Below, piece after piece: positions 16,101 through 46,200 of a DNA stretch of 64,000 nt. The stretch is taken from contig NC_043020.1 of NCBI RefSeq assembly GCF_006345805.1, forward strand, positions 8,308,001 through 8,372,000, in the 5' to 3' direction. The notes beneath the pieces were generated by a model. That model saw only the letters and a program-made list of their open reading frames with translations. It did no database searches and was not told the DNA's origin. This stretch comes from Octopus sinensis (Eukaryota). Within the stretch, counting starts at the first letter, position 1; each line of letters starts with the position of its first letter. Made by a program: the position numbers and the translations under genes.

Positions 16101-19100
16101 ACTCTGTGGGGTGGTTGGTGTTAGGAAGGGCAACCAGCTGTAAAAAGATCTTGCCAAAACTGACCCTGTCTGTGCTGGTGCCACGTCACCAAATCCCAGT
16201 TACATCTTCACTTTTATTTCAAGTATTCGTGAAATGTAGCATCACTTAGTGTAAGGCTCAAAGTGGGGCCCTAATATGATGATAAATGCTTCACAAATCA
16301 GTGAAGGGGGAGACAAAGGATATAAACACAACAGCTCGTTAGATAAGTGGGGAAGGAGTGTGAGGGTAACGACTTCCAATTATTTATTAGAAGTTGTTGA
16401 TGATGATGATGATCTCCATCTAATGTTTGTTCCTTCATTTGTTACAGATGTGGAACCAACTGTCTTCTACAAGAATTTATCAAAGGCATTGAAGAAACAC
16501 ATAAACTACCCTGAGGTAATTATCTTTATCATTCTTCATATAAACCAGTAACTTAAATCCTTTTGATGCCAAACTGCCTAAGAGGCATAATACCAACTTC
16601 TTGTCTTAAAGAGATCTCTCTTTTACTCTCTTATACTTGTTTCAGTCATTTGACTGCGGCCATGCTGGAGCACCACCTTTAATCGAGCAAATCGACCCCG
16701 GGACTTATTCTTTGTAAGCCCAGTACTTATTCTATCGGTCTCTTTTGCCGAACCGCTAAGTGACGGGGACGTAAACACACCAGCATCGGTTGTCAAGCAA
16801 TGCTAGGAGGACAAACACAAACACACACACATACACACATATATATATATATACATATATACGACGGGCTTCTTTCAGTTTCTGTCTACCAAATCCACTC
16901 ACAAGGCATTGGTCGGCTCGGAGCTATAGCAGAAGACACTTGCCCATGATGCCATGCAGTGGGACTGAACCCGGAACCATGTGGTTGGTTAGCAAGCTAC
17001 TTACCACACAACCACTCCTGCGATTAAAACCTTCCATCAAAATTCATTATTTTTTAATGTCCATATTTTCCATGCTTGCCTGGATCAGATGGGATTCATT
17101 TAAGACAGATTTTCCAGGACTAGGACTGGATGCTCTACCTGTTGCCGACCCTCATCTGTTTTCAAGCAAAGTAAGATCTCCTCCCCATGGCCAGCCCCGG
17201 CTTGTTTTTTCACAGAAGACTGGAAACCAATGATGTCACTTATATGACAATCATTTTACAACCATCATGTGAAGTCAAGAGAGATGGGAGGCGGCACACA
17301 GACATATATATATATATGTTGGGCTTCTTTTCAGTTTCCATCTATCAAATTCACTCACTTTAATTTCAGGTGATTGACAAGTTTCTGGAGGGTTTGCAAG
17401 ATTACATACAGATAAGACACAGGTGAGTAATTAACATTCATCCAGGGGAGTAAATTGTAATAGTTTTACTACAACAGGGGAGGACAGATTGTAGGCTATT
17501 AAACTCAATTACAATGGCTCAATTAGCTGACCAAACTAGCACTCACACTCAGCTCAAAACAATATCTGTGTATCGCAATTTTGAGCTGAGTGGGAGTACT
17601 AGATTCCCTTGTTCCAAAATATAAGGACACAGATCGTGTCGTATAGCCAGATAGAGACGATGTCTCCTGGGACTAAATTACAGCAACATTCATCCTAAAC
17701 CAGGACTGCCATGTTATGTTGGCAAACAATCTTTACTACAAAGTACTGTTGCTGAATATCTCATGTTGTCATCATCATCGTTTAACGTCCGTTTTCTGTG
17801 CTAGCATGAGTTGGACGGTTCGACCAGGGTCTGGGAAGCCAGGAGGCTGCACCAGGCTCCAGTCTGATCTGGCAGAGTTTCTACAGCTGGATGCCCTTCC
17901 TAACACCAACCACTCCGTGAGTGTAGTGGGTGCTTTTTACGTGCCACTGGCACAGGTGCCAGGGGAGTCTGGCAGCAGCCACGATCGGTTGGTGCTTTTT
18001 ATGTGCCACCAGCACAGAAGCCAGTCAAGGCGGCACTGGCATCGGCCACGTTCGGATGGTGCTTTTTACGTGGCACAGATGCCAGGGGAGTCTGGCAGCG
18101 GCCACGATCGGTTGGTGCTTTTTACGTGCCACCAGCACAGAAGCCAGTCAAGGTGGCACTGGCATCGGTCACGTTCAGATGGTGCTTTTTACGTGCCACC
18201 AGCACAGGTATCACAACTACTATTTCCATTTGATATTTATTTCGATGTTCATGTACTTGAGATTTAAAAATAGTAATTTTCTAATTATTAATATTATTAA
18301 GGTGGCAAGCAGGCAGAATCGTTAGTACACTAGACATAATGCCAAGTAGCATTTCATCTGTCTTGACATTCTGAGATCAAATTCTGCCAAGGTCGATTGT
18401 ACCTTTCATCTTTTTGGGGGCGATTATTACCAACTATCCCTGCCACCAGAATTTCAAGCCTTGTACACATAGTAGAAAGGATTGTTGTTATTATTTTTGC
18501 CTTTCATCCTTTCAGGGTCAATAAATTAAGTACCAGTTGAGTACCGGGGTCAAAATAATCAGCTTGTCCCCCTCCCCCAAAATTTCAGGCCTTATGCCTA
18601 TAGTAGAAAGGATTATTATTATTATTAATAGGCCGTTTGCCAGCCTCCTCTGGTACCTGTGCCAGTGGCACGTAAAAAGCACCCACTACACTCACGGAGT
18701 GGTTGGCGTTAGGAAGGGCATCCAGCCGTAGAAACATTGCCAGATCAAATTGGGGCCTGGTGCAGCCTCCTGGCTTCCCAGACCCCAGTTGAACCGTCCA
18801 ACCCATGCTAGCATGGAAAGCGGACGCTAAACGATGATGATGATATATGATGTGCTGAAATTAAAGGTGGTGATCTGCATTTTGTCCCGTCTTTACATTC
18901 TGAGTTCAAATTCCGCTGAGGTTGAATTTTTACTTTTCATCCTTTCGGATGAAGTACAGTGGAACATTGGGGTCAATGTAATCGGCTAGTCCCCTCCCCA
19001 CAAATTTTAGGCCATTTGCTTCCAGTAGAAAAGATTATGATGTGTTGAAATATATTTTATTATTTTTTTATTTTATTTTATCTAGTTTCAGCTCACGAGC

Positions 19101-22100
19101 TGTGGCCATGCTGGGGCACCACCATTTAGATTTACGTGGAGCTTTAGGTGCTTTCGCTCAATAAACACTCACAACGCCCAGTCTGGGAATCGAAACCGCG
19201 ATCCTACGACCGCGAGTCCGCTGCCCTAACCACTGGGCCATTGCGCCTCCACATTGTGCATATTCTGTTTTTTTTTTCAAAGTAAATTATTTATTTTTGC
19301 TTTTCCTCTTTTGCTGTCCTTTTAAAGGTTTATCAAGAGTCTTATGCCATGTACAGTTGCCAAAGACAGGTAAGATGCTGCCTTGTCTCTCTTTTTCTCT
19401 GTTCTTATTGTAACATAGTTACTTGTCACCAATTATTGTAGTATCACCACTATTAACCCTTTCATTACCAACCCAACTGAAACCGGCTCTGGCTCTGTAG
19501 TACAAATGTCTTGTTTTCATAAGTTCTGAATTAAAACCTTCCACCAAACCTTAGTCACAATTTATGTTCCTAAACACTAGCTTAATGATAACCAAGTTAT
19601 TTTACTAAATTCTTTGTTATATTTAAAGTAATTGAAAGAAACACAGAGCATCTCAGCAGAAATATGGTAAGAAAAGGGTTAAAATATGTAATAGAGAAAC
19701 AATTCTTAATCCTTTCATTACCAACCTGGCTGAAACTGCCTCTGACTCTGTAGTACAAATGTCTTGTTTTTATAAGTTTTGAATTAAAATCTTCCACCAA
19801 ACCTTAGTCATAATTTATGTTCCTAACACTAGCTGAATGATAATGAAGTTATTTTACAAAATTCTTTGTTATATTTAAAGTAATTGAAAGAAACACAGAA
19901 CATCTCAAAATAAATACAGTAACGAAAGGGTTAATGACAATACCTGCTTACACTATAACCATGTAGTGACAATAAAATATATAACGAAGCCAGGTAACAA
20001 CAAGGTAACCATCCAACAAATTCTCCACAAACCAACAAACAATATTCCAACAAATTACCAAAACATCACCTTACGACTTCCTGCGATTAACGCCTACTCT
20101 CTCTCTGTCTCTCACTCAGACCGCTACTACTTATAGTCGTTTGGTCAAGTCTATTCTCACAAGTCTATTCTCTCCTTCACATACCTACTCATACACACAG
20201 ATACAGTCATGCTCCATCTCTCTCTCTCTCCTTACCTATACATACAATCAACTCATTTCTCCTTTCATCTCTCTCTCTCCACATACAATCACACTTAATC
20301 CCTCACTCTCTCTCACTCTCCTTCCACATTCACTTGTCTCTCTTCTGCTTACCACATATAATCACACCTCTCTCTCTTTACATACTGTCATATCTCTTCT
20401 CTCTCTCTCTCTCTTCTCTCTCTCTCATCTTCCTCTTTGTCTCTTCTGTTTCAGTGCCATCAAAAGCCAACGACCTCGCTGTCTGATAAAGTTACTCCTG
20501 GAAGTTGAATCTCTGCAGGTCAGTGTTAGACGGCTGCAGCTGGTCACTACACAGACTGCACCAAGCACTATTACATTTTTTGACCACTAAGTGACCTTAA
20601 CATAAGATAAGTGTTCTAATTGGTGACTGTACAACTAGGTAAATGAGCCATTAGATGGTTGGAGCAATGGGTGAGGGCACCAATTAACATAAATGTCACT
20701 AGATTTGGGTACCATTTGGTAAGGGTATGACTAGATTTGGGTACCATTTGGTAAGGGCATGACTAGATTTGGGTACCATTTGGTAAGGGTATGACTAGAT
20801 TTGGGTACCATTTGGTAAGGGCATGACTAGATTTGGGTACCATTTGGTAAGGGTATGACTAGATTTGGGTACCATTTGGTAAGGGTATGACTAGATTTGG
20901 GTACCATTTGGTAAGGGTATGACTAGATTTGGGTACCATTTGGTAAGGGCATGACTAGATTTGGGTACCATTTGGTAAGGGTATGACTAGATTTGGGTAC
21001 CATTTGGTAAGGGTATGACTAGATTTGGGTACCATTTGGTAAGGGCATGACTAGATTTGGGTACCATTTGGTAAGGGCATGACTAGATTTGGGTACCATT
21101 TGGTAAGGGCATGACTAGATTTGGGTACCATTTGGTAAGGGCATGACTAGATTTGGGTACCATTTGATAAGGGTATGACTAGATTTGGGTACCATTTGGT
21201 AAGGGTATGACTAGATTTGGGTACCATTTGGTAAGGGCATGACTAGATTTGGGTACCATTTGGTAAGGGCATGACTAGATTTGGGTACCATTTGGTAAGG
21301 GTATGACTAGATTTGGGTACCATTTGGTAAGGGCATGACTAGATTTGGGTACCATTTGGTAAGGGCATGACTAGATTTGGGTACCATTTGGTAAGGGCAT
21401 GACTAGATTTGGGTACCATTTGGTAAGGGTATGACTAGATTTGGGTACCATTTGGTAAGGGTATGACTAGATTTGGGTACCATTTGGTAAGGGTATGACT
21501 AGATTTGGGTACCATTTGGTAAGGGCATGACTAGATTTGGGTACCATTTGGTAAGGGCATGACTAGATTTGGGTACCATTTGGTAAGGGCATGACTAGAT
21601 TGGGTACCATTTGGTAAGGTATGACTAGATTTGGGTACCATTTGGTAAGGGTATGACTAGATTTGGGTACCATTTGGTAAGGGTATGACTAGATTTGGGT
21701 ACCATTTGGTAAGGGCATGACTAGATTTGGGTACCATTTGGTAAGGGCATGACTAGATTTGGGTACCATTTGGTAAGGGTATGACTAGATTTGGGTACCA
21801 TTTGGTAAGGGTATGACTAGATTTGGGTACCATTTGGTAAGGGTATGACTAGATTTGGGTACCATTTGGTAAGGGTATGACTAGATTTGGGTACCATTTG
21901 GTAAGGGTATGACTAGATTTGAGTACCATTTGGTAAGGGTATGACTAGATTTGGGTACCATTTGGTAAGGGTATGACTAGATTTGGGTACCATTTGGTAA
22001 GGGCATGACTAGATTTGGGTACCATTTGGTAAGGGTATGACTAGATTTGGGTACCATTTGGTAAGGGTATGACTAGATTTGGGTACCATTTGGTAAGGGT

Positions 22101-25100
22101 ATGACTAGATTTGGGTACCTCATGATTGGAGTCTCAAAGACTTGAGAAATACTTGATGGGAATACCAATGAATAAAACTAGCATCCCTTGGTGTTTTAAA
22201 ATCTGTTAAATTAGTTCCCTATACATTCTGTATGTGAAGGCACATGGCTCAGTGGTTAGAGTGTCGAGCTCACAATCATGAGGTAGTGAGTTCGATTCTT
22301 GGACCAGGCTATGTGTTGTGTTCTTGAGCAAGACACTTTATTTCATGTTGATCCAGTTCACTCATTTGAAGAAATGAGTTGTGGCATCACTGGTGCCAAG
22401 CTGTTTCGGCCCCTTTGCCTTTCCCTTGGATAACATCGTTGGCATGAAGAGGAGAGGTTGGTATGCATGGGTGACTGTTGGTCTTCCATAAACAAGCTTG
22501 CCCAGGCTTGTGCCTCTAAGGGGAACTTTCTAAGTGCAATCCCATTCATTACCAAAAAGGGTCTTTACCCTTTCACTCTTTATGGGTTGGACGAATTCAT
22601 TGTGGATGATTTTCTACATAGTTCTTTACCCTATACATTCTGAAGTCAATCAAATTTTGTCAGAATCGAATATTTGTGTGTGTGTGTTTGTCAAAGGGGT
22701 ACTTACCTATAGGAATTCCGGAGAAGGGTTAAGTCGATTACATCAGGGGTACCTGTCAATTTAATTGAGGGTGGCAATGCTGCTATCCCACTGCCAAAAA
22801 TTTGTGGCTTTATCTCAGTGTACGAAATAATCATACATACATACACCCGACTGGCCTCCGTGCTGGTGGCACATAAAAAGCACCATCCGATCATGGCCGT
22901 TTGCCAGCCTCATCTGGCACGTAAAAAGCACCCACCACACTCATGGAGTGGTTGGCGTTAGGAAGGGCATCCAGCCATAGAAACACTGCCAGATCAGACT
23001 GGGCCTGGTGCAGCCTTCTGGCTTCCCAGACCCCAGTTGAACCGTCCAACCCATGCTAGCATGGAAAGCAGACGTTAATCAATGATGATGATGACATAGG
23101 CCAAACCTCTAAGTCAGTTTTAAATTCTGTGAAAGCTGTTTTACTTCATGTTTGTTGTTAATATTCTTAGGACAGAAAGGCAGGGGGGCTGGCAGAGTGG
23201 TTAGCACGCCGGGCGAAATGCTTAGCGGTATTTCGTCTGCCGTTACGTTGTGAGTTCAAATTCTGCCGAGGTCGACTTTGCCTTTCATCCTTTCGGGGTC
23301 GATAAATTAAGTACCAGTTACGCACTGGGGTCGATGTAATCGACTTAATACCTATGTCTGTCCTTGTTTGTCCCCTCTGTGTTTAGCCCCTTGTGGGTAA
23401 TAAAGAAATAGAAATGGGTATTTCGTCTGTCTTTACATTCTGAGTTCAAATTCCATCGAGGTCGACTTTGCCTTTCATTCTTTAGGGGTTGATAAATTAA
23501 GTACCAGTTGTGTACTGGGATCGATCTAATCGACTGCGCCACCCCCACCCCCCTTCCCAAAAATTTCAGGCTTTATGCCTCGAGTAGAAATGAATATTTC
23601 CATAAAGTAAGACAGTGAGCTGGCAGAAACATTGGCACGCTGGGTGAAATCCTTAGCAGTATTTCGTCTGTCTTTATGTTCTGAGTTCAAATTCTGCCGA
23701 GGTCAACTTTGCCTTTCATCCTTTATGGGTCAATACATTAAGTGCCAGTTGCATACTGGGATCGATCTAATCGACCGGCCCTCTCTCCCAAAATTTCGGG
23801 CCTTGTGCCTAGAGTAGAAAAGAATATCCTTCGGAGAGAATAAGGCAGCAAACTGTCAGAATTGTTAGCGGGCCAAGCAAACCGTTTAGTGATGAGTCAT
23901 CTGTCTTTATGATCTGAGTTCAAATTCCACCAAGTTCGACTTTGCCTTTCTTCCTTTTGGAGGTTGATAAAATAAGTACCAGTTGAGCACTAGGGTTGAT
24001 GTAATCCACTTAACCCCTTCTCCGGAATTCCTAGCCTCGTGCCAAAATTTTAAACCGATATTTTTCTGGCAGAATTATTAGCATGCTGGACAAAAAGCTT
24101 AAAGGCATTTCATCCATCTTTACGATTTGAGTTCAAATTCCACCAAGGTCAACATTGCCTTTCATAATTTTGGGGCTCATAAAATTAAGTGCCAGTTGAA
24201 GTTGCTGGCCTTGTACCAAAATTCAAAACCAGTATTCTTAGGACGGGCATGAATGTCTCCCAATCTCATCCTTTCTATAAACCCTATATTTTTTGTCTAT
24301 TTGCTTTGTTTTGCAGCCAAAACTAATAAACATTCTTCTTGAGAAGTTACCAGAATTCATGGACGAAGATGAGTAAGTAACATACAGCATGTCCACCATC
24401 AGATGTGTTCCAGCCATGACCATCACCTCCATTTCTTTTGTTTTAGATATAGTCCATCAAGGACTACATTAGTCAATGTGTCCATTCTTGAGACATTATA
24501 TTTGAAACAATATGGGGAAGCCCACATTGGATAATGCTGTTATAGATACAAAATTTCTGAATAATAGGTGTGATGGTCATTGCTGGAACACTTTTGACCA
24601 TAGGTCTGCTGAATCAGATCAACAACAACAGTAATTATAACTGCATCATCATCATCATCATAGGGTGGTGAGCTGGCAGAATCGATAGCACATCAGGCAA
24701 AATGCTCAGAAGTATTTCATCTGTCTTCGTGTTCTGAGTTCAAATTCTGCTGAAGTCAACTTTGCCTTTTATCTTTTTGGGGTTGATAAAATAAATACCA
24801 GTCATGTACTGGGGTTGATGTAATCAACTGTCCCCCATTTCTCAAATTTCAGGCTTTGTGCCTATAGTAGAAAGGATTATTATTATTATTGCGGGTGTGA
24901 TGGTAGAATTGTTAGCACGCTGGGCGAAATACTTAGCAGCATTTTGTCCACCTTTGCATTCTGAGTTCAAATTCTGCCGAGGTCAACTTTGCCTTTTATC
25001 CTTTTGCAGGGGTCAATAAAATAAATACCAGTTAAACACTGGAGTCAATGTAATCAACTCTCCCACTCCCCCCAAAATTGCTGGCATTGTGCCAAAATTT

Positions 25101-26557
25101 GAAACCAATATTATTTTCATCATCACCATCATCATCACAACTGTTGACATCAGTTCTCGTTATGCTAATAATTATCGTTATCAAAGACATCATCGTTGTC
25201 ATTAACCTGACCTGCTTCATCAGTTTAACCTTTGACCTTTTGTTTCCAGGTCAATATTTTCCTGTGAGGAATCTCCAGTAAACATACCTCGACAGATTCT
25301 GACCCAGCTGCAGTGGTTGGAGAACATTGTGAACATGACGGTAAGGTGTTGCATTGTGGGAACAATGGATCTGAGTCACGTCGGGAGCTTAATTGTTGAG
25401 TGAGAGAGAGAGAGTTCTTTTGGACTAAAATCTATGCAAAGAGTAATCATCATCATCATCATCATCGTTTAACGTCCGTTTTCCATGCTGGCATGGGTTG
25501 GACGGTTCAACTGGGGTCTGGGAAGCCAGGCCCAGTCTGATCTGGCAGTGTTTCTACAGCTGGATGCCCTTCCTAACGCCAACCACTCCGCGAGTGTAGT
25601 GGGTGCTTTTTATGTGCCACCTGCACAGGTGCCAGACGAGGCTGGCAAATGAAGCAATGTATTGTAACGGTGGGATTGTTATAACGGCTGATTGGGTGTC
25701 ACTTTTGTAATGTTGTGTATTATCTTATTCATGTGGTTTCTACTGGGATTGATAATAAATACATTTTATATCTTGAGTGAGAATCTATATTGATAAACCC
25801 ATGACTTATAACTTGATTATAAGTATTATCATCATCATCATCATCGTTTAGCGTCCGCTTTCAATGCTGGCATGGGTTGGACGGTTCAACTGGGGTCTGG
25901 GAAGCCAGAAGGCTGCACCAGGCCCAGTCTGATCTGGCAATGTTTCTACAGCTGGATGCCATTCCTAACACCAACCACTCCATGAGTGTAGTGGGTGTTT
26001 TTTACGTGCCAGACGAGGCTGGCAAACGGCCACGATCGGATGGTGCTTTTTACATGCCACTGGCACGGAGGCCAGGCGAGGCTAGCAAACGGCCGCGATC
26101 GGATGGTGCTTTTTACGTGCCACCGGCACGGAGGCCAGTCGGGACGGCGCTGGCAACGGCCACGTTCAGATGGTTCTCTTATGTGTCACCGGCACTGGTA
26201 TCACAGCTACAATTTCTATTGGTGTTGATAATTTTGATTTTGATTTATCACTAAACAAATCTCAACTCAAGCTATATAAACGCCATAGGGAAAAGTATAT
26301 ATATATCAAGACGCTTGAAAGGACATGTTGAATGTGCATGTATTTTACTCACATGTACTTATTTGTTTCAGTCATTTGACTGCGGCCATGCTGGAGCACT
26401 GCCTTTAGTCGAGCGAATCGACCCCAGGCCTTATTCTTTGTAAGCCTAGTACTTATTCTATCTGTTTCTTTTGCCAAACCGCTAAGTTACAGGGACGTAA
26501 ACATACCAGCATCGGTTGTCAAGCAATGTTGGGAGGACAAACACACACACATACACA

Positions 26558-31400: not shown

Positions 31401-34400
31401 TTACATGCAAGAATGATTGTGTGGTTGAGAAGTTTGCTTCCCAACCACATGGTTCCATGTTCAGTCCCTCTGCACGGTACCTTGGGCAAGTGTTTTTTAC
31501 TATAGCCCTAGGCCAACCACAGACTTGTGACTGAACTTGGTATTCAGAAACTGCAGCGTTGTTCTTCAGAAGATGACTGAAGAACATTTTTATAAAGAGG
31601 AGTGTGTGTGTGTGTGTGTGTGAATCTGTATGTTTTATGTGAATGTGCAACTGTTTGCATGTTAATACATGTGTGTGTATGTGTGCATCTATGTATATGA
31701 ATCTATATGTGTATGAGTTTGTAACTGTCTATATTTATTGTATGGTTGCTTCTAAATGTGTGTCTATGGAATGTAATTTCTATGATGATGATGATGATGA
31801 TGATGATAATAATAATGTTTGTCTATTCCTCCCTTCTTCAGGTATTCACTGAAATGAGGAATTACTTGCAGTTTGACTCCCTGGTGCCAATAGCTTCCTC
31901 GACTCCTCTTCCTGGACCATCAACTAGCAGGTAGGTTGCCATGGTAACCACTCCATTAGTAGGCCTGGTGGTCGTGATGTCATGTCAGCTGTGGCAGTGG
32001 GGTGATGGTGGCGGCTGTGTGTGTGGGGGGGTGTAGCTGTAGAAGATGTGTTATTTCCATGTCAGTCACAACAAAGCTCTCTCTCTCTCTCGTTTTAAAA
32101 GGTTTTTCACTTTTTAATCAAGGTGGATTGTGGAAGCACTCCGTCGGTACGACGACAAGGGTTCCGGTTGATCCGAATCAACGGAACAGCCTGCTCATGA
32201 AATTAACGTGTAAGTGACTGAGCACTCCACAGACACGTGTACCCTTAACGTAGTTCTCGGGGGATATTCAGCGTGACACAGAGAGTGACAAGGCCGGCCC
32301 TTTGAAATACAGGTACAACAGAAACAGGAAGTAAGAGTGAGAGAAAGTTGTGGTGAAAGAGTACAGCAGGGATCACCACCAACCCCTGTCGGAGCCTCGT
32401 GGAGCTTTAGATGTTTTCGCTCAATAAACACTCACAACGCCCGGTCTGGGAATCGAAACCGCGATCCTATGACTGCGAGTCCGCTGCCCTAACCACTGGG
32501 CCATTGCGACTCCACTTAAGCAAGGTACCTTTATCATTGAAAGTGATGTTATCATCATCATCACCCTCATCATCAAATGTCCAAAGACTATATCTTTCGG
32601 CAAGGTTTCTAAGGCTCGATGCTCTTCCTAACGTCAACCCCTTTACAACATGGACTGGGTGCTTTTTTTGTTTGTGCCACCAGCATTTGTGAGGATTACA
32701 AGCCTTGGGTTTGGTGGTGGGGGTCAGCTTCATGGCAAGGAATAAGGGGATTACTATGAGAGAAGGGGGCAGTCCAAGCTACTGTAGAAGGACCTGCATG
32801 GCTACTCAAAAAGGGTTGGTGGGTGATCAGTAGGGACTGCAAGACAGAGATGATGGCAGTAAGGTGCATGGGTAGCCCCACAAGGGCACTAGCTGAGTAG
32901 AAGTAGGTGGGTGGTTTTTTTTCAGATTTTATGGGAAGGTGAATGACAGGTGGGGGTTGGGGGTCAGACTGCCTAATTGGCTAAGGGTGAAAGGAGGATG
33001 AAAAGAGTGGGAGCGGTGCAAGTGAAAAAAGGTGACAGTAAAGTTCCATTCTTGAGTCATGCCAACTCCTAAGGGGCCAGTTTCCATGGTGTATAAATCC
33101 CACACCTGGACGGGACGCCAGTCCATTGCAGCGTTACTCATTTTTGCCAGCTTAGTGGACTGGAGCAACATGAAATGAAGTGTTTTGCTCAAGGACTCAA
33201 CGCGTTGCCCGGTCCAGGAATCGAAACCACAATCTTACAATCACGAGTCCAACACCCCTAGCCACTAAACCACACATCTCTACTGGTGGTGCAAGTAGCA
33301 GGATTTGTAAAGATGATACAGCTGCTGGTGGCAGCAGGGATGAGGTAGACGTAGTGCACGAGAGGAGGGAGGAGACACTGTCATGGGCAGAGGACCCTGA
33401 TTATACCACTTCCAGAATTCAGTCTTGTTGAGGAGGATGAGTCTTTTTAAGGATCACCATCAAATATTACCCACCATGACCACCACTGCTGCATCATCAA
33501 CTAAAAGCCTCCAAACAGTATTATTGCTACCATCAGGGCAGTGAGCTGAAAGAATCGTTAGCCCACGGGGCAGTGAGCTGGAAGAATCGTTAGCCCACGG
33601 GGCAGTGAGATGGAAGAATCGTTAGCCCACGGGGCAGTGAGCTGGAAGAATCGTTAGCCCACGGGGCAGTGAGCTGGAAGAATCGTTAGCCCACGGGGCA
33701 GTGAGCTGAAAGAATCGTTAGCCCACGGGGCAGTGAGCTGGAAGAATCGTTAGCCCACGGGGCAGTGAGATGGAAGAATCGTTAGCCCACGGGGCAGTGA
33801 GATGGAAGAATCGTTAGCCCACGGGGCAGTGAGATGGAAGAATCGTTAGCCCACGGGGCAGTGAGCTGGAAGAATCCTTAGCCCACGGGGCAGTGAGATG
33901 GAAGAATCGTTAGCCCACGGGGCAGTGAGATGGAAGAATCGTTAGCCCACGGGGCAGTGAGCTGGAAGAATCGTTAGCCCACGGGGCAGTGAGCTGGAAG
34001 AATCGTTAGCCCACGGGGCAGTGAGCTGAAAGAATCGTTAGCCCACGGGGCAGTGAGCTGGAAGAATCGTTAGCCGACGGGGCAGTGAGCTGGAAGAATC
34101 GTTAGCCCACGGGGCAGTGAGCTGGAAGAATCGTTAGCCCACCGGGCAGTGAACTGGAAGAATTGTTAGCCCACGGGGCAGTGAGCTGGAAGAATTGTTA
34201 GCCCACGGGGCAGTGAGCTGAAAGAATCGTTAGCCCATGGAGCAGTGAGCTGAAAGAATCGTTAGCCCACGGGGCAGTGAGCTGAAAGAATCGTTAGCCC
34301 ACGGGGCAGTGAGCTGGAAGAATCGTTAGCCCATGGGGCAGTGATGGTTTTGTGGCATTTCATCCATCTTTACATCCTGAGTTCAAATTCTGCTGTGGTC

Positions 34401-40220: not shown

Positions 40221-43200
40221 CATATATACGACAGGCTTCTTTCAGTTTCCATCTACCAAATCCACTCACAAGGCATTGGTCAGCCCGGGGCTATAGCAGA
40301 AGACACTTGCCCAAGATGCCATGCAGTGGGACTGAACCCGGAACCATGTGGTCGGTTAGCAAGCTACTTACCACACAGCCACTCCAGCGCCTATTTGTTT
40401 ATACACGTTTATTTATACCTAAGTTATTACAAGTTAACAATAATCTATATTCTTTCTCTTCCTGTCTCTCTCTCTCTCTTGTAGACAGACCTCCACATTG
40501 TGGTCAAGAAACAATTAATGAGTAACAAATTAAAGTAAGTACAGATAATTAATTAGTCACTAATTCAATATCATTGTTTTAACGTCCACTTTTTCATGTC
40601 AGCATGAGTCAGATGACTGGTGTACATTTTCACTCAGAAATTTGTTGCCTTGGAACTAATTACGTAAACCACTTTATTCTTTTTCTTGAAGGTATAAACA
40701 AAATGGAATCATTGGTGGTGTTATGTTGGTAAAGAACCTTATACCTGTCAGGTAAGTTAGTTCATTTGGATCTAGAACCTGCCTTGCATCTCTCAGGTAT
40801 GTTGTCTCTTTGGGTCTTGAACAACATGCCTGTCGAGTATGTTGTTTCAATTTGGTGAAGACTTCACACCTGTCAGGTATGTTGTATGTTGTTTTGAGTT
40901 GGTCAACATCTCACACCTGGCAGGTAAGTTGTGTAATGTTGATCAATAACCTCACATCTATCGGGTAAGTTGTGCCTTTGAGTCAACTTCACACCTGTCA
41001 GTAAATTGTTTCATGTTGGTGAAGACTTTTATATTTGTCAGGTATGTTGTGTGGTGCTGATCAACCTCTCACACCTGTCTGGTATGTTGTTCATTGAGAA
41101 CCTCGTATCTGTCAGGTGTGTTGTGTGATGTCATTTAAGCTTTCACACCTGTCAGGTAAGTTAATTCATGTGAGCCAACACTGCACAACTGACAGATAAG
41201 TTTATTCTTGTTAGTTAAGACCTGACACTTGCCAGGTATGTATTATTGTTTGAGTCAAGCCCTCACACCTGTCAGGTATATTGTGTGATGTTGGTTAAAA
41301 CCACCATTGTATTACTGGTACCAGTTTGGTGACTTGGTGTGCTTGAAAAGAATCGTCAAACCAGGTGAAATCATAATTGTGACTGGTGCCAATGGTATGT
41401 AACAGCTCCTGTGCTAACGTTTCTGCCAGCTTGCCGCCTCTTCTAATACCCCTTTTGTTGTGGCAAGACACCTGTTTCTGTCTCTATCTCTTTGTCAAAC
41501 TCTAACCTTTCATCCTCTGGCACAAGTTCCCCTCCTCAAATGCCCTGCCCCTCTCGTAATTCCTTGTATTGTGAGTTACTTGGTTACCCTGCCAGTGCTG
41601 GTGCCATGTAAAAAGCATCCAGTCCCCACTGTAAGGTGGTTGGCATTTGGAAGGGCACCCAGCTGTAAAAAATCATGCCAAAACTAACCTCACCTCTGCT
41701 AGTGCCACGTAAAAAGTACTGAGTCCACTCTGCAGAGTGGTTGGTGTTAGGAAGGGCATCCAGCTGAAAAATCCCTGCCAAAACAGACAGAATAGCCTAG
41801 GGTAATTTTTCTACCAGACCAGCTCCTGTCACAGTGATTATATATAATATATACACATATGTGTGTGTGAAGGTCCATGGCTTAGTGGTTAGGGTACCCG
41901 GCTCATGATTGTAAGGTTATGAGTTCAATCATGGCACAGGGCATCATAATCAATGGAGTGTCACTTATCTATCTATCTATCTATATATATACACACACAC
42001 GTGTGTATTTTTTCAATGTGTACAAATAACACAGAAAAAAAATAGTTACCAGGGTAGCAAAAATTCACATAAGTGCCAACGATGTTACAGCCTACTTATA
42101 AAGGTAGAAATTCCAGGGTTTAGTGAAATGTTTTTGTATGACATAGATAAATTAAGAAATGGAGTTAAACGCAGGTGTTATTCAAATCTTTATACTTCCG
42201 ACATATGTTTCGAAGAAGACATTGGTATTATTCCTAAGGGAATAAAATGATGTAAAACAATGTAATCATCTCGTCAGGGAAAAAAGAGAAACAAAACACA
42301 TCAATAATCCATTTTAACCGAATGTGATTACCACGTATATGATGGAGGGAACGCTGGCAAGTTATTTCTTTTGTTTCTCTTTTTTCCCTGATGAGATGAT
42401 TAAATTGTTATTGTTTTGCATCATTTTATTCCCTCAGGAATAAACCAACGTTTTCTTTGAAACATATGTCGGAAGTATAAATATTTGAATAACACCTACG
42501 TTTAACTCCATTTCTTTATCTATGTTATATATATATATACATATATATATATATGTGTGTGTGTGTATGTCAGTTTTGTATGTCTCAACAATTTCCTACA
42601 ATTCTTACTGTTTTTGGTAATTTTCCTCCAACAGTGCTGATAATTTGGTGACCCCTGAAAATGTAAATGATGCCATTACCCTGTTGAAATTGATGAACAC
42701 CAGCAGTCTGCAACTGGCCAGTGCTCGTGCTTTGTTCATGGACGAGCTGTCCATGGTCATCACCCACACAAAATTACATCCGAAAGTAGAGGTGAGTTCT
42801 TTGATCTAACTTCTCCAGTATTTTTGTGTCTCTTGCAGTTGTTAGTGGCAATGTCTAAATTCTTTTGTTACCATGTTTCTGTTGAGATGCTCTGTGTTTC
42901 TTTCAATTAATTTTAAATATAACAAAGAATTTAGCAAAACAACTTAATTATCATTAAGCTGGTATTAGGAACATAATTGTGACTAAGGTTTGGTGGAAGA
43001 TTTTAATTCGGAACTCTTGAAAACAAAGACATTTGTATCACAGAGGCGGTTTCAGCCAGGTTGGTATCAAAAGGGTTAAGCTGATCCTGATCAAGAAAAG
43101 ACCTGTGATCAAAGGTGTTCCATCCATGACAGTCCTGTCTTTAAATGGGAATGGTAGGCCTTGCCTTGCTTTACCTTGGGTCTTGAGAGGCGGTTGGATG

Positions 43201-46200
43201 GAACCTACACTCGCCTCCTTATGAGAGCTCAAAATCTCTCGTGGAAGTGCCATCCAACCAAAATGCAAATATATGGGAAATTACCACCTGTGTCATCTCT
43301 TGTGAAAGGTAGGAGAGTCCAGTTTGCTGGACAGTGTTGTAGAGCTGAAAAAGAAGTAATTTCTACTCTTCTCCTCTGGAAGCCATCTACTCGCAATACC
43401 AGAGGGCGCACACTCTCCTACCCTGATGTAATCTCCAGGGATACAGGCATCCAGCAACAGGACCTCCGTAATGCCATGATGGACCGTGAAGTCTGGCGTA
43501 GCATGGTAAATTCCATTGTCTCGACCACGGTCGAACAATGATGATGATGATGGGCCTTCAACTCTTGGATGCTGTCATAGGGTTGCCTTGTGTTGAGGAT
43601 TTTCACACCTGACCGTGCTTCTCTCTCTCTCTACCATTCTGATCACAATTTTTGTAGTGGAAAGAATTTATATCGGATTCTGTCTTTATTCTTCAGGAAT
43701 GGATCGAAGAGAACGTCATTGCAGACTTCCAGGACAGTTATGTGATTGATGTTCATGATGACTACTTAAAAAAGTAAGAACTACCATTACTACTACTACT
43801 ACCAACACCACTATTCTACTACTACCACCACTATTACTACTCCACCCACTATACTAACTACCCCACCACCATTATTACTACTACTACCACCACCATCACT
43901 ACTACTATCACCACCACTACCACCACCACCGCTATTACCACTACTACCATCACTACTACTACTACCACCACCACCACCACTACTACCACCACTAACTCTA
44001 CCACCACCACTATTACTACTACTGCCACTACTACTTCTTTGTTTCTGAATTCTTTTCCTTCTTTCTTCTAACTTCTGAGTTCCTTTCAAGCGCTGGGTTC
44101 TCACAGAAGCAATGGCCAAGACTTTTGCTATAATGTTGTGCTTGAGAAGAAGACCCATCAAGCCGAGCAAAATCACAGTCATGGCAGATACCGATGTCAC
44201 ACAAATGGCACCTGTACTGGTGTCATGCAAATTGGCACCCGTGCCAGTGGCATGTAAAAGCAGCCCAGTGTCACGCAAATGGCACCTGTGCTGGTGGCAC
44301 ATGAAAGCACCCATCACATTCTCTAAATGATTGGCATTAGGAAGGGCATCCAGCTGTAGAAAACCATGCCAAATCAGACTGGAGTCTGGCGCAGCCTTCC
44401 AGCATGTCAGCCCAGTTAAACCGTCCAACCTATACCAGCATGGACAATGGATGTTAAATGATGATGATGATGATTATCATTAAACTTTAGTATTTAAACC
44501 GGCTATATCCAGCCAAAATATTTAATCTGTTTTATGCTCAAACTGACCAGATCCAGGCCCTCACACCTACCCTACAATGTTATTCTACATTAAGTAATTA
44601 CACCATCAAGCTCTTGAAGATATGAGATAATACATGATTAATTCAAATCAATGGGAATCAATAAGCATTATGTTTGATTGAATAATCTGAACACTAAAGG
44701 GTTAAACAGAGAAAAAAGGAATTTCTTTTTTTTTTTTTTTTTTTTAACATAAATTCTCTCCGAAATGATTTTTACTTTGTATCCCTTTCTCTCCTCAGAC
44801 AAACTCTGCTTCCTCTGGATTTCCAATACTCCCTGGACGATGATGTCGAAGACAACGTTGCCGTGATCATCCTACCACTCTTACTCTACGGAACAGCTTC
44901 CACTTCTCCTGTCTTTGACTATGCTGAAAGGTAAAGTTCATTGTGGATCTCTGCAATTTTTGATTGATTTCCTTGTTTCTGGAAATTTCCATAGAATCAC
45001 TGAGGCTACAGTTCTATTTTACGTCTACTTTCCATGCCAGTATAGGTTATTGGGGACACAAACACACCAACACTGATTGTCAAGCAATGGGAGTGGTGAG
45101 ACAAATACAGACACACATACACACACATATATGATGGGCTTCTTTCAGTTTACCAAATACACTCCATCCGGGGGATCACCACCATCCGGCAGGGGATGGT
45201 GGTGATCCCTGCTGTACTCTTTCACCACAACTTTCTCTCACTCTTTCTTCCTGTTTCTGTTGTACCTGTATTTCAAAGGGCCGGCCTTGTCACTCTCTGT
45301 GTCACGCTGAATATCCCCGAGAACTACGTTAAGGGTGCACGTGTCTGTGGAGTGCTCAGCCACTTACACGTTAATTTCACGAGCAGGCTGTTCCGTTGAT
45401 TTGGATCAACCGGAACCCTCGTCGTCATAAACGACGGAGTGCTTCCATCCATAGGTTTTGGATAGGAATTGATATGAAGCAAGATTCTTACAGCTTGATG
45501 CTCTTCCTGTTGCTAACCCTTAACTGTTTGCTCTATTAAGTAAGGGATTTCTTTTTTATTGCACAGGTTGTAGAAAGTGCTGAACTACCTGTAGTTCAGT
45601 CAAAAAAGAAATCCCTTACTTAATAGAGCAAACAGTTAAGGGTTAGCAACAGGAAGAGCATCAAGCTGTAAGAATCTTGCTTCATATCAATTCCTATCCA
45701 AAACCTATGGATGGAAGCACTCCGTCGTTTACGACGACGAGGGTTCCGGTTGATCCAAATCAACGGAACAGCCTGCTCAGTGATTGCCACCATAAAAACA
45801 GATGTTAAATGTTGAATATATATATATGAGTAGGAGTGGCTGTGTGGTAAGTAGCTTGCTTACAAACCACATGGTTCCGGGTTCAGTTCCACTGCGTGGC
45901 ACCTTGGGCAAGTGTCTTCTACTATAGCCTCAGGCCGACCAAAGCCTTGTGAGTGGATTTGGTAGACAGAAACTGAAAGAAGCCCATCGTATATATGTAT
46001 GTGTGTGTATATATTTGTGTGTCTGTGTTTGTACCCCCAACATCGCTTGATAACCGATGCTGGTGTGTTTACGTCCCCGTAACTTAGCAGTTCGGCAAAA
46101 GAGACCGATAGAATAAGTACTAGGCTTCCAAAGAATAAGTCGCGGGGTCGATTTGCTCGACTAAAGGCGGTGCTCCAGTATGGCCACAGTCAAATGACTG

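Follow-up and report, generated by a model that had tools for sequence, protein, structure and literature searches.

An intron of the FANCD2 gene of Octopus sinensis opens with a series of degenerate copies of its own 5′ splice site, and this raises the question of whether the supernumerary donors regulate splicing or are simply carried along. A literature search brought up no publication about intronic repeats and splice sites in octopus. Analysis of the array within a window of 64 kb (the whole stretch of DNA under study) suggests that it is probably a locally born, old and slowly decaying minisatellite composed of exon-junction copies. In what follows a slash marks a splice junction.

The host gene

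The exons on either side of the array encode FANCD2 (Pfam FancD2, 5.7e-13; human FANCD2 residues 554–647), and three of them are relevant here:

40485..40537, + strand: FANCD2 exon with the K561 equivalent (TDLHIVVKKQLMSNKL + AA), preceding the 60-nt exon; donor AAA/GTAAGT
40692..40751, + strand: 60-nt FANCD2 exon, (K)YKQNGIIGGVMLVKNLIPV(S), opening with one codon-completing nucleotide and closing with a split-codon AG
42635..42792, + strand: following FANCD2 exon, (S)ADNLVTPENV...KLHPKVE; acceptor ccaacag/

The first of these aligns to human FANCD2 residues 554–570 and is 100% identical to residues 506–522 of the O. bimaculoides protein XP_014781670.1. It encodes VVKKQL, the equivalent of the human K561 ubiquitination site. 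The array had been described, in a prior sequence-only reading of this DNA, as lying right after the ubiquitination region, and this needs adjustment: the lysine equivalent sits at 40485–40537, one exon before the exon that bears the array. The array-bearing exon is the 17th coding segment as mapped with the partial O. bimaculoides protein; a Tegillarca (mollusc) gene model, P0025, is without this 60-nt exon. It is followed by an intron of 1,883 nt (40752–42634), across which the octopus protein reads KNLIPV/SADNL and that of O. bimaculoides reads KNLTPVSADDNL. (An 89-aa spliced query gave no match in a word-indexed protein search; an exhaustive search recovered XP_014781670.1.) The same 60-nt exon, with the same split-codon phases and the same intron position, is present in the cnidarian Actinia tenebrosa, a sea anemone (L002, 10358–10419). 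Judged by this comparison, the exon, its boundaries and the intron are ancestral and very ancient.

Organization of the array

The repeat is a degenerate 40-bp tandem array of ~14.6 units (40712–41302) that begins inside the 60-nt exon and extends ~550 nt into the intron. It has two parts:

40712..40760, + strand: unit 0, the founder, recognized by alignment to the intronic units; the exon's final 40 nt together with the real donor CAG/GTAAGTTAG
40761..41302, + strand: intronic units, 13 plus a partial 14th, 34–47 nt each (mode 40); consensus TTCATGTTGGTCAAAACCTCACACCTGTCAG/GTATGTTGT

Unit 0 is 48–71% identical to the intronic units across the full unit length, and the segment 40715–40758, covering the exon end and donor, matches them ungapped at 70–77%; the units include the conserved GGVM codons. 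A fuzzy search for ACCTGTCAG/GTAAGT locates 14 junction-like motifs, with the first post-junction base at 40752 (the real junction), 40797, 40837, 40877, 40924, 40965, 41002, 41042, 41082, 41116, 41156, 41196, 41236 and 41276. Their spacing is exactly 40 in 8 of the 13 intervals and ranges overall from 34 to 47. All 14 positions had been placed correctly in the sequence-only reading, offset by one base through a difference of convention, and its count of junctions stands; its end of the array does not, as the repeat continues into a partial 15th unit (founder counted) to ~41302.

Homology spans the entire unit, with gapped alignment yielding a 40-column consensus, and the single orientation, head-to-tail arrangement, constant period and whole-unit homology are those of a minisatellite. 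TRF reports just two pieces of the array, with periods of 47 and 40, as is to be expected of copies ~65% alike. No open reading frame of note crosses the array on either strand.

The array is unique in the window. A 21-nt core pattern, with up to three mismatches permitted, has six matches, all within the array, where none is expected (100 shuffles). The core motif is found nowhere else in the 64-kb window and has no matches among metagenome contigs, so the array is not part of a dispersed element; a transposon part or a known RNA was likewise rejected, there being no other copies in the window and Rfam scores falling far below gathering thresholds. Nor is this a general habit of the gene, as none of its other 21 donors in the window has local junction copies. 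The other large intronic arrays (20698–22119, 33536–34344 and 43780–44035) contain no GT site of at least 7 bits on the donor scale described below.

Donor quality of the copies

Each copy was scored, in bits, against a matrix built from the gene's other 21 donors. The 22 real donors range from -0.3 to 13.0 bits with a median of about 9.8, and 8 of the 13 intronic copies score inside the real-donor range as competent-looking donors. The earlier estimate that at least 8 of the 13 extra copies are near-consensus is thus upheld, eight of them scoring 7.9–13.0 bits:

40794..40802, + strand: candidate decoy donor CAG/GTATGT, 9.2 bits
40834..40842, + strand: decayed copy CGA/GTATGT, 4.7 bits
40874..40882, + strand: candidate decoy donor CAG/GTATGT, 9.2 bits
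40921..40929, + strand: candidate decoy donor CAG/GTAAGT, 13.0 bits, the same sequence as the real donor from -3 to +7
40962..40970, + strand: candidate decoy donor CGG/GTAAGT, 9.8 bits
40998..41007, + strand: decayed copy CAG/TAAATT with G deleted; shifted weak CA/GTAAAT, 5.8 bits
41039..41047, + strand: candidate decoy donor CAG/GTATGT, 9.2 bits
41079..41087, + strand: weakened copy CTG/GTATGT, 3.9 bits
41113..41121, + strand: candidate decoy donor CAG/GTGTGT, 7.9 bits; its core is a perfect E-box palindrome arm (CAGGTG)
41153..41161, + strand: candidate decoy donor CAG/GTAAGT, 13.0 bits, the same as the real donor
41193..41201, + strand: dead copy CAG/ATAAGT, GT lost (from the motif search)
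41233..41241, + strand: candidate decoy donor CAG/GTATGT, 9.4 bits
41273..41281, + strand: weakened copy CAG/GTATAT, 6.4 bits

Several features of the copies may be noted. First, the copies at 40924 and 41156 reproduce the real CAG/GTAAGTT and at 13.0 bits are level with the real site; they sit 172 and 404 nt past it, alongside degenerate copies of the exon's last 34 nt. Second, five of the 13 copies (40837, 41002, 41082, 41196 and 41276) are dead or weakened. Third, the majority variant among the copies is GTATGT, with T at +4, a base present at that position in 1 of the 22 real donors. Fourth, complementarity to the U1 5′ end is 9/9 in two copies and 8/9 in five. Finally, the sites are strongly concentrated: half of all the sites matching U1 at 8/9 or better in 51 kb fall within the array's 0.5 kb, and 8 of the 82 GT sites of at least 7 bits in 47 kb fall inside its 0.55 kb.

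Such a clustering of donors, two of them identical to the real one, lends itself to the view that the array is a maintained bank of decoys, or a rheostat for unproductive splicing. U1 snRNP would bind the eight strong copies, splicing from a downstream copy would bring in the TAA at 40753 and lead to nonsense-mediated decay (NMD), and the controllable fraction of transcripts so treated would set FANCD2 output just past the exon of the ubiquitination site. We regard this as unlikely, for reasons that emerge from the pattern of conservation below.

The same U1-complementary sites, strong ones beginning 45 nt downstream of the real donor, could alternatively be bound by U1 snRNPs that do not splice and that aid recognition of the 60-nt exon or shield the nascent transcript, by analogy with engineered exon-specific U1s or telescripting. 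The shortness of the exon would favor such a helper, and its absence from the Tegillarca model suggests that it is hard to recognize, at least for annotation pipelines. Nonetheless, the donor of the exon is already perfect at 9/9 and its acceptor good (6.4 to 13 bits class), and Actinia splices the same 60-nt exon with no such repeat in the ~100 nt read downstream, as judged by reading alone. The intron is also short (1.88 kb), so that little telescripting would be needed, and there is no donor-specific conservation. A role in exon definition thus seems quite improbable.

In-frame stop codon and splice site choice

Immediately past the real junction lies a stop codon:

40753..40755, + strand: in-frame TAA (GTC AGG TAA), encountered if the real donor is skipped; direct reading of the sequence

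That reading on beyond the real donor gives AGG TAA had been proposed before and is confirmed by the sequence: every downstream donor would add the in-frame TAA. Productive mRNA would be expected to take the first donor, since this is the sole choice that yields the conserved FANCD2 frame, and the O. bimaculoides protein agrees with it. Splicing from a downstream copy would place the TAA two bases (one codon) past the normal junction and would presumably lead to NMD.

In mammalian systems with two consensus 5′ splice sites separated by 45 nt or more, splicing takes place almost only at the intron-proximal one (PMC3413131). Given this preference the perfect copies at 40924 and 41156 should be costly unless they are suppressed, and by this analogy they would sit uneasily with a purely neutral view; together with the immediate stop, the predicted use of the copies counts in favor of a decoy bank. 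RNA structure that hides the decoys or exposes the real donor was considered and rejected. The predicted unpaired probability of the 9-nt donor windows is low everywhere, at equilibrium and at nascent lengths alike, and gives the real donor no advantage over the copies.

The juxtaposed CAG/GT also invites the idea that the copies are recursive sites, as put forward in the sequence-only reading, or dual-specific sites, each used as an acceptor and then as the regenerated donor in a stepwise removal of the intron that would leave no trace in the mRNA. Exact AG/GT is kept in 8 of the 13 copies, which read CAG/GT and as donors score 6.4–13.0 bits (seven of them at least 7.9), as at ratchet points; the next donor lies 40 nt on, the layout needed for a cryptic recursive exon (PMC8605326); and in human UBC and VCX3A the AGGT units of tandem repeats serve as both donor and acceptor (PMC10809524). 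The acceptor sides speak against it, however. Where 19 real acceptors have a median of 9.8 bits and a U fraction of 0.56, the pseudo-acceptors have 3.9 bits and 0.28, and just 2 of the 13 reach the lower range of real sites. Moreover, ratchet points occupy long introns and the host intron here spans only 1.88 kb, with its 3′ end outside the repeat. We therefore consider recursive splicing highly improbable here.

Age and conservation of the units

The mean pairwise identity of full units is 65%, and at lags of one to seven units it stays at 63–67%, independent of the distance between them. Adjacent units thus resemble each other no more closely than remote ones do, as befits an old array that is not undergoing homogenization; a higher-order repeat structure is rejected by the same flat profile.

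If the copies were kept as donors, the GT dinucleotides might be better conserved than neighboring unit positions, a check that the sequence-only reading had called for. They are not: agreement with the consensus is 88% at positions -1, +1, +2 and +5 and 83% across the rest of the core (permutation p = 0.25). This result is one half of what that reading had itself named as the refutation of a functional role.

Conservation is nonetheless uneven along the unit. A 22-nt block from -13 to +9 (TCACACCTGTCAG/GTATGTTGT) matches the consensus at 84% versus 63% for the other 18 columns (permutation p ~5e-4), a within-array comparison that is inflated by anchoring on the motif and by indels in the variable half. 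The contrast persists among the eight units of exactly 40 nt, and such an excess is not predicted by uniform neutral decay. The number of copies matching U1 at 8/9 or better, seven, compares with ~1.3 expected at 63% per site and ~7.3 at the core value of 84%.

For a decoy bank the better preservation of the junction core is favorable, but the details are not: GT and the U1-critical positions are kept no better than the adjoining core columns, the conserved block exceeds the U1 footprint by 10 nt on its upstream side, five of the copies are decayed, and the majority variant GTATGT is rare among the gene's real donors. More broadly, the proposition that selection keeps the array as a multi-site U1 platform, in which use of the first donor or of one of up to eight near-identical donors farther on would set the ratio of productive to NMD-targeted FANCD2 transcripts, or which would enforce recognition of the 60-nt exon, strikes us as distinctly unlikely.

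The upstream reach of the block could instead mean that the selected feature is not a donor at all and is rather a 17–22-nt near-palindrome, CACACCTG-T-CAGGTaTG, whose two halves are inverted, E-box-like CACCTG sequences. Its repeats would provide an intronic series of sites for dimeric DNA binding, or would work through RNA duplexes between units or between a unit and the exon end (for example as an ADAR substrate). The block from -13 to +9 is roughly centered on the palindrome center (-4) and extends upstream beyond what a donor needs; the array RNA folds better than shuffled sequence (z = -3.1, 20 shuffles); and pairing between the exon end and the last unit is 93% across 14 nt. However, the units owe the palindrome to the exon-plus-donor sequence itself, compensatory changes are absent, those in the left arm being plain C-to-T transitions, and predicted accessibility does not set the real donor apart from the copies. 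Exon-unit duplexes have energies of -17.5 to -26.5 kcal/mol, within ~1.6 sd of random intron controls (-19.0 ± 4.7), and on these grounds an ADAR-type duplex between the exon end and the array was rejected. Selection on the near-palindrome is very unlikely.

The array consensus CTC ACA CCT GTC AG encodes L T P V, and at the codon in question O. bimaculoides has T and the window I. The notion that the array preserves an ancestral codon was dropped because the ancestral state is ambiguous: a distant cephalopod-like homologue (P0002) has V at this position, and the T of the exon at -10 recurs in units 7 and 9.

Origin of the array

An ancestral exon, old unhomogenized units and an array found once in the window agree best with the fallback offered in the sequence-only reading, that of an old, neutral minisatellite to which the exon gave rise. 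It is the exon that seeded the array, because a sea anemone has the same exon with the same two boundaries. From the anatomy we infer that a ~40-bp segment over the exon 3′ end and donor (...GGTGTTATGTTGGTAAAGAACCTyAyACCTGTCAG/GTAAGTT) was duplicated in tandem and then grew to ~14.6 units by slippage or unequal exchange. The first copy alone is joined to the exon's upstream half and its reading frame, and the others would for that reason merely have lengthened a pre-existing ancient intron by ~550 nt. Because each copy brought a donor with it, eight 5′ splice sites that look competent and are weak on the acceptor side lie within the first 0.55 kb of the intron. These spare donors are most likely old passengers and not a built regulator. 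This mode of origin, the use of the first donor, the NMD fate of other products and the lack of a selected function are what we infer from the evidence as a whole.

If the array is merely a decaying minisatellite, it is a neat case of a junction-spanning duplication masked by splicing, with lengthening of an intron, and its reach is limited. If the copies are bound or used, the consequences would be wider. The mammalian in vitro rule predicts that a downstream site wins (PMC3413131), yet the conserved protein needs the first donor; with a real donor trailed by exact copies of itself, the locus is a natural test of how 5′ splice sites are chosen in vivo, by exon definition, by order of transcription or by context. 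Binding or use of the copies could also reveal unproductive splicing of a DNA-repair gene. Were the U1-platform reading true, a repeat would encode a splicing rheostat in a natural gene, and the spliceosome would there have to prefer, systematically, the intron-distal one among several identical 5′ splice sites.

Comparison with known systems

The array shares with intronic minisatellites and VNTRs a head-to-tail 40-bp intronic unit in ~14.6 degenerate copies with small indels. It is unlike ordinary members of this group in that the unit copies the adjoining exon 3′ end and 5′ splice site, giving a near-consensus donor per unit.

A second parallel is the Rogers model, which Hellsten et al. 2011 (PMC3265369) re-enacted and in which an intron is gained when a segment containing AGGT is duplicated in tandem. 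There too the intron resembles the flanking exon, the duplication spans AG/GT and splicing hides it. In FANCD2, by contrast, an intron was already present at the same position and phase in Cnidaria, and the duplication was then amplified to 14 copies; with the Actinia intron at the same place, this is a case of intron extension and not of gain.

The dual-specific arrays of UBC and VCX3A (Duan et al. 2024, PMC10809524) also carry an AGGT core in each unit, and splicing inside the repeat would restore the same junction; AGGT is present in 8 of the 13 intronic octopus units and in the exon unit. The octopus units differ in being non-coding, old and 40 nt long (not a multiple of 3), with weak acceptor sides, and unlike the UBC type, where donor and acceptor both fall inside the repeat and the intron is a whole number of units long, the true acceptor at 42634 lies 1.3 kb past the end of the array, outside the repeat.

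Recursive splice sites of Drosophila and vertebrates (PMC8605326) likewise have a juxtaposed AG/GT that regenerates a strong donor, and another donor farther downstream. Their introns are long, on the order of tens of kb, unlike that of the octopus copies, which are 13 sites clustered at 40-nt spacing in a short intron (1.88 kb) and have a poor polypyrimidine tract.

Closest to the question of site choice are the in vitro constructs of Hodson et al. 2012 (PMC3413131), in which identical consensus donors at least 45 nt apart share one pre-mRNA and U1 binding is expected at each, as here. The octopus locus differs in that the gene is a natural one, with as many as nine candidate sites, and in that its productive site must be the intron-distal (first) one, the opposite of the in vitro rule.

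Copies of an exon/donor junction in a FANCD2 intron

Most of the length of the FANCD2 gene lies on the + strand of the window, and the partial O. bimaculoides protein XP_014781670.1 was placed on it exon by exon between 13118 and 52256, most true exon matches being ~85–100% identical, so that the source octopod is a near relative of O. bimaculoides and a different species. One intron opens with a tandem array of ~40-bp copies of the preceding exon's 3′ end and 5′ splice site; the spliced translation around it has a Pfam FancD2 match (5.7e-13) and matches human FANCD2 residues 554–647. Junctions are marked by a slash, and positions within units are counted from them.

FANCD2 features around the array
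40485–40537, +: exon with the human K561 equivalent (VVKKQL), by protein alignment
40692–40751, +: 60-nt exon coding (K)YKQNGIIGGVMLVKNLIPV(S), read from the sequence
40712 to ~41302, +: junction array, ~14.6 units, by fuzzy search and unit alignment
Start 42635, +: following exon, by exon mapping

The last two bases of the 60-nt exon, AG, belong to a split codon and abut a perfect CAG/GTAAGT donor; since the following exon begins at 42635, the host intron is 1,883 nt. Fuzzy search found 14 copies of ACCTGTCAG/GTAAGT, recovering every junction position listed by the sequence-only reading, with a spacing of 40 nt in 8 of 13 cases and 34–47 nt in the remainder. Exon segment 40715–40758 aligns to the intronic units ungapped at 70–77% identity, the homology extending beyond the donor, and a gapped unit alignment yields the 40-column consensus TTCATGTTGGTCAAAACCTCACACCTGTCAG/GTATGTTGT. 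The core motif does not occur elsewhere in the 64-kb window (0 expected by chance), and no local junction copies were found beside the window's 21 other donors. An Rfam search of the array returned nothing meaningful, and no notable ORFs cross it on either strand.

If the real donor is ignored the frame runs GTC AGG TAA, as had been claimed, so that splicing from any downstream donor would add an immediate stop; such transcripts would presumably be cleared by NMD. Spliced from the first donor, the coding sequence agrees with the O. bimaculoides protein on both sides of the junction, and because the frame is conserved only from this donor, productive mRNA must use it. Two differences from that protein lie nearby. 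Counting back from the junction, the third full codon is I in the window and T in O. bimaculoides; as evidence that the array predates the split from that species this difference was ambiguous and was dropped. At the start of the following exon (42635–42650) the window has SADNL and O. bimaculoides SADDNL (residues 542–547), which either an indel of 3 nt or a change in acceptor position could explain.

Origin and age of the array

In the sea anemone Actinia tenebrosa (locus L002, 10358–10419) the equivalent exon is also 60 nt, is bounded by the same one-base/two-base split codons and is flanked by introns in both corresponding places. This makes the exon with its donor older than the array by hundreds of millions of years, and it was the exon that seeded the array. 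Mean pairwise unit identity is 65%, independent of the distance between units, which argues against recent homogenization and for a long time since the last duplications. With the ancestral exon and this divergence, the earlier suggestion of an old minisatellite seeded from the exon is the simplest account. We lean toward it: a tandem duplication spanning the junction would have come first, later amplification of the duplicated segment would have lengthened an ancient intron, and the array would have been decaying ever since.

The annotated Tegillarca granosa protein P0025 lacks the 60-nt exon (alignment gap over YKQNGIIGG), a short exon probably missed by the bivalve gene model. Unit 7 (41011–41050) is closest to unit 3 (82% identical), from which it differs mainly by clustered C-to-T changes in the core left arm (CTTCACACCTG to TTTTATATTTG); like the exon, it has T at −12 and −10, and the pattern may reflect clustered deamination or conversion from the exon copy.

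The copies as splice sites

The gene's own splice sites, 22 donors and 19 clear acceptors, supplied the log-odds matrices (small samples of ~20 sites each), the array's own donor being excluded when copies were scored. Real FANCD2 donors span −0.3 to 13.0 bits (median ~9.8).

Donor scores of the copies, named by the first base after the junction
40924, 41156: 13.0 bits, equal to the real site
40797, 40877, 40965, 41042, 41236: 9.2–9.8 bits
41116: 7.9 bits
40837, 41002, 41082, 41196, 41276: weakened or dead

Eight copies (7.9–13.0 bits) are therefore within the range of real donors, in keeping with the proposed minimum of eight near-consensus extra donors. Exact duplicates of the real donor lie 172 and 404 nt downstream, each after a degenerate copy of the exon's last 34 nt. 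Half of the sites matching at least 8 of 9 U1-pairing positions in 51 kb of the gene fall in the array's 0.5 kb. Of the 82 GT sites in 47 kb that score at least 7 bits, 8 are there too. The CAG/GT copies could also be read as recursive splice sites; however, the array copies make weak acceptors (median 3.9 bits versus 9.8 for real acceptors; U fraction 0.28 versus 0.56), only two scoring as high as the lowest real ones, and the host intron is short, which makes recursive splicing the least likely explanation.

Constraint within the array

When unit is compared with unit inside this one array of one genome, consensus matches in the 13 intronic units reach 84% over a 22-nt block (−13 to +9) and 63% over the other 18 columns; motif anchoring, together with indels in the variable part of the unit, enlarges the difference. 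Permuting the columns seldom brings well-kept ones together to this degree (p about 5e-4), and the pattern survives when only the eight units with a length of exactly 40 nt are compared. The expectation that GT would be better kept than its neighbors failed: the donor-critical positions −1, +1, +2 and +5 match at 88% versus 83% for other block columns (p = 0.25), and GT is intact in 11 of 13 copies versus 13 of 13 for −6T, −3C and +6T. The array itself thus gives no indication that the copies are selected for donor function. On its upstream side the block passes the U1 footprint by 10 nt. Its sequence, CACACCTG-T-CAGGTaTG, is nearly palindromic, a property that the original exon end and donor already contain implicitly. 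Among the copies the most frequent variant is GTATGT, whose T at +4 is shared by only 1 of 22 real donors. Judged from the units themselves, the array contains a slow core that donor constraint does not explain.

A decoy or NMD rheostat, an exon-definition helper, and a palindrome-binding or RNA-duplex element are functional readings that even jointly seem rather unlikely. Compared with shuffled sequences, the array RNA has a more stable fold (z = −3.1, 20 shuffles), as expected from palindromic cores; predicted accessibility does not separate the real donor from the copies, and exon-end/unit duplexes are within ~1.6 sd of random intron controls.

Other repeats in the window

Two further FANCD2 introns contain 32-bp minisatellites. 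The first (20698–22119; 44.5 copies, 98% matches, unit ACTAGATTTGGGTACCATTTGGTAAGGGTATG) is young and begins ~180 nt beyond the 5′ splice site of the exon that ends at 20518; none of its 43 GGTAAGG copies reaches 7 bits on the in-gene donor matrix. The second (33536–34344; 25 copies, 96% matches) has 18 copies of CAGTGAGC and no strong donor-like site. A degenerate (ACT/ACC)n tract of ~250 nt (43780–44035) starts only 6 nt past donor 43774 (AAAAAA/GTAAGAACTACC). Tandem SINE-like units of 56–68 bp (up to 123 bp), containing GGTGCTTTTTACGTGCCACC or its complement, recur in both orientations at 87–318, 17929–18207, 26008–26138 and 41596–41771, one pair sharing the intron of the junction array. 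At 42128–42542 lies a MITE-like inverted repeat whose 99-nt arms are 84% complementary and separated by 217 nt; further arms of 46 and 34 nt are nested in it, and ~90 nt lie between its end and the acceptor of the next FANCD2 exon.

Relation to known systems

One of three things must hold: the first site is strongly favored in vivo, the copies are silenced in a way invisible in sequence, or an appreciable share of FANCD2 transcripts is unproductive. Exon definition and order of transcription are candidate routes to first-site preference in octopus, and the array is of value chiefly as a natural test case for how one 5′ splice site is chosen over others. It is a real sequence feature and a fresh example of already known kinds of event. 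Like intron gain in the Rogers model, re-enacted by Hellsten et al. (PMC3265369), it would involve tandem duplication of an AGGT-containing segment; here the junction already existed, so that an intron would have been extended and none created. Its layout, with AGGT once per unit, resembles the UBC and VCX3A repeats (PMC10809524), from which it differs in coding content and, probably, in use.
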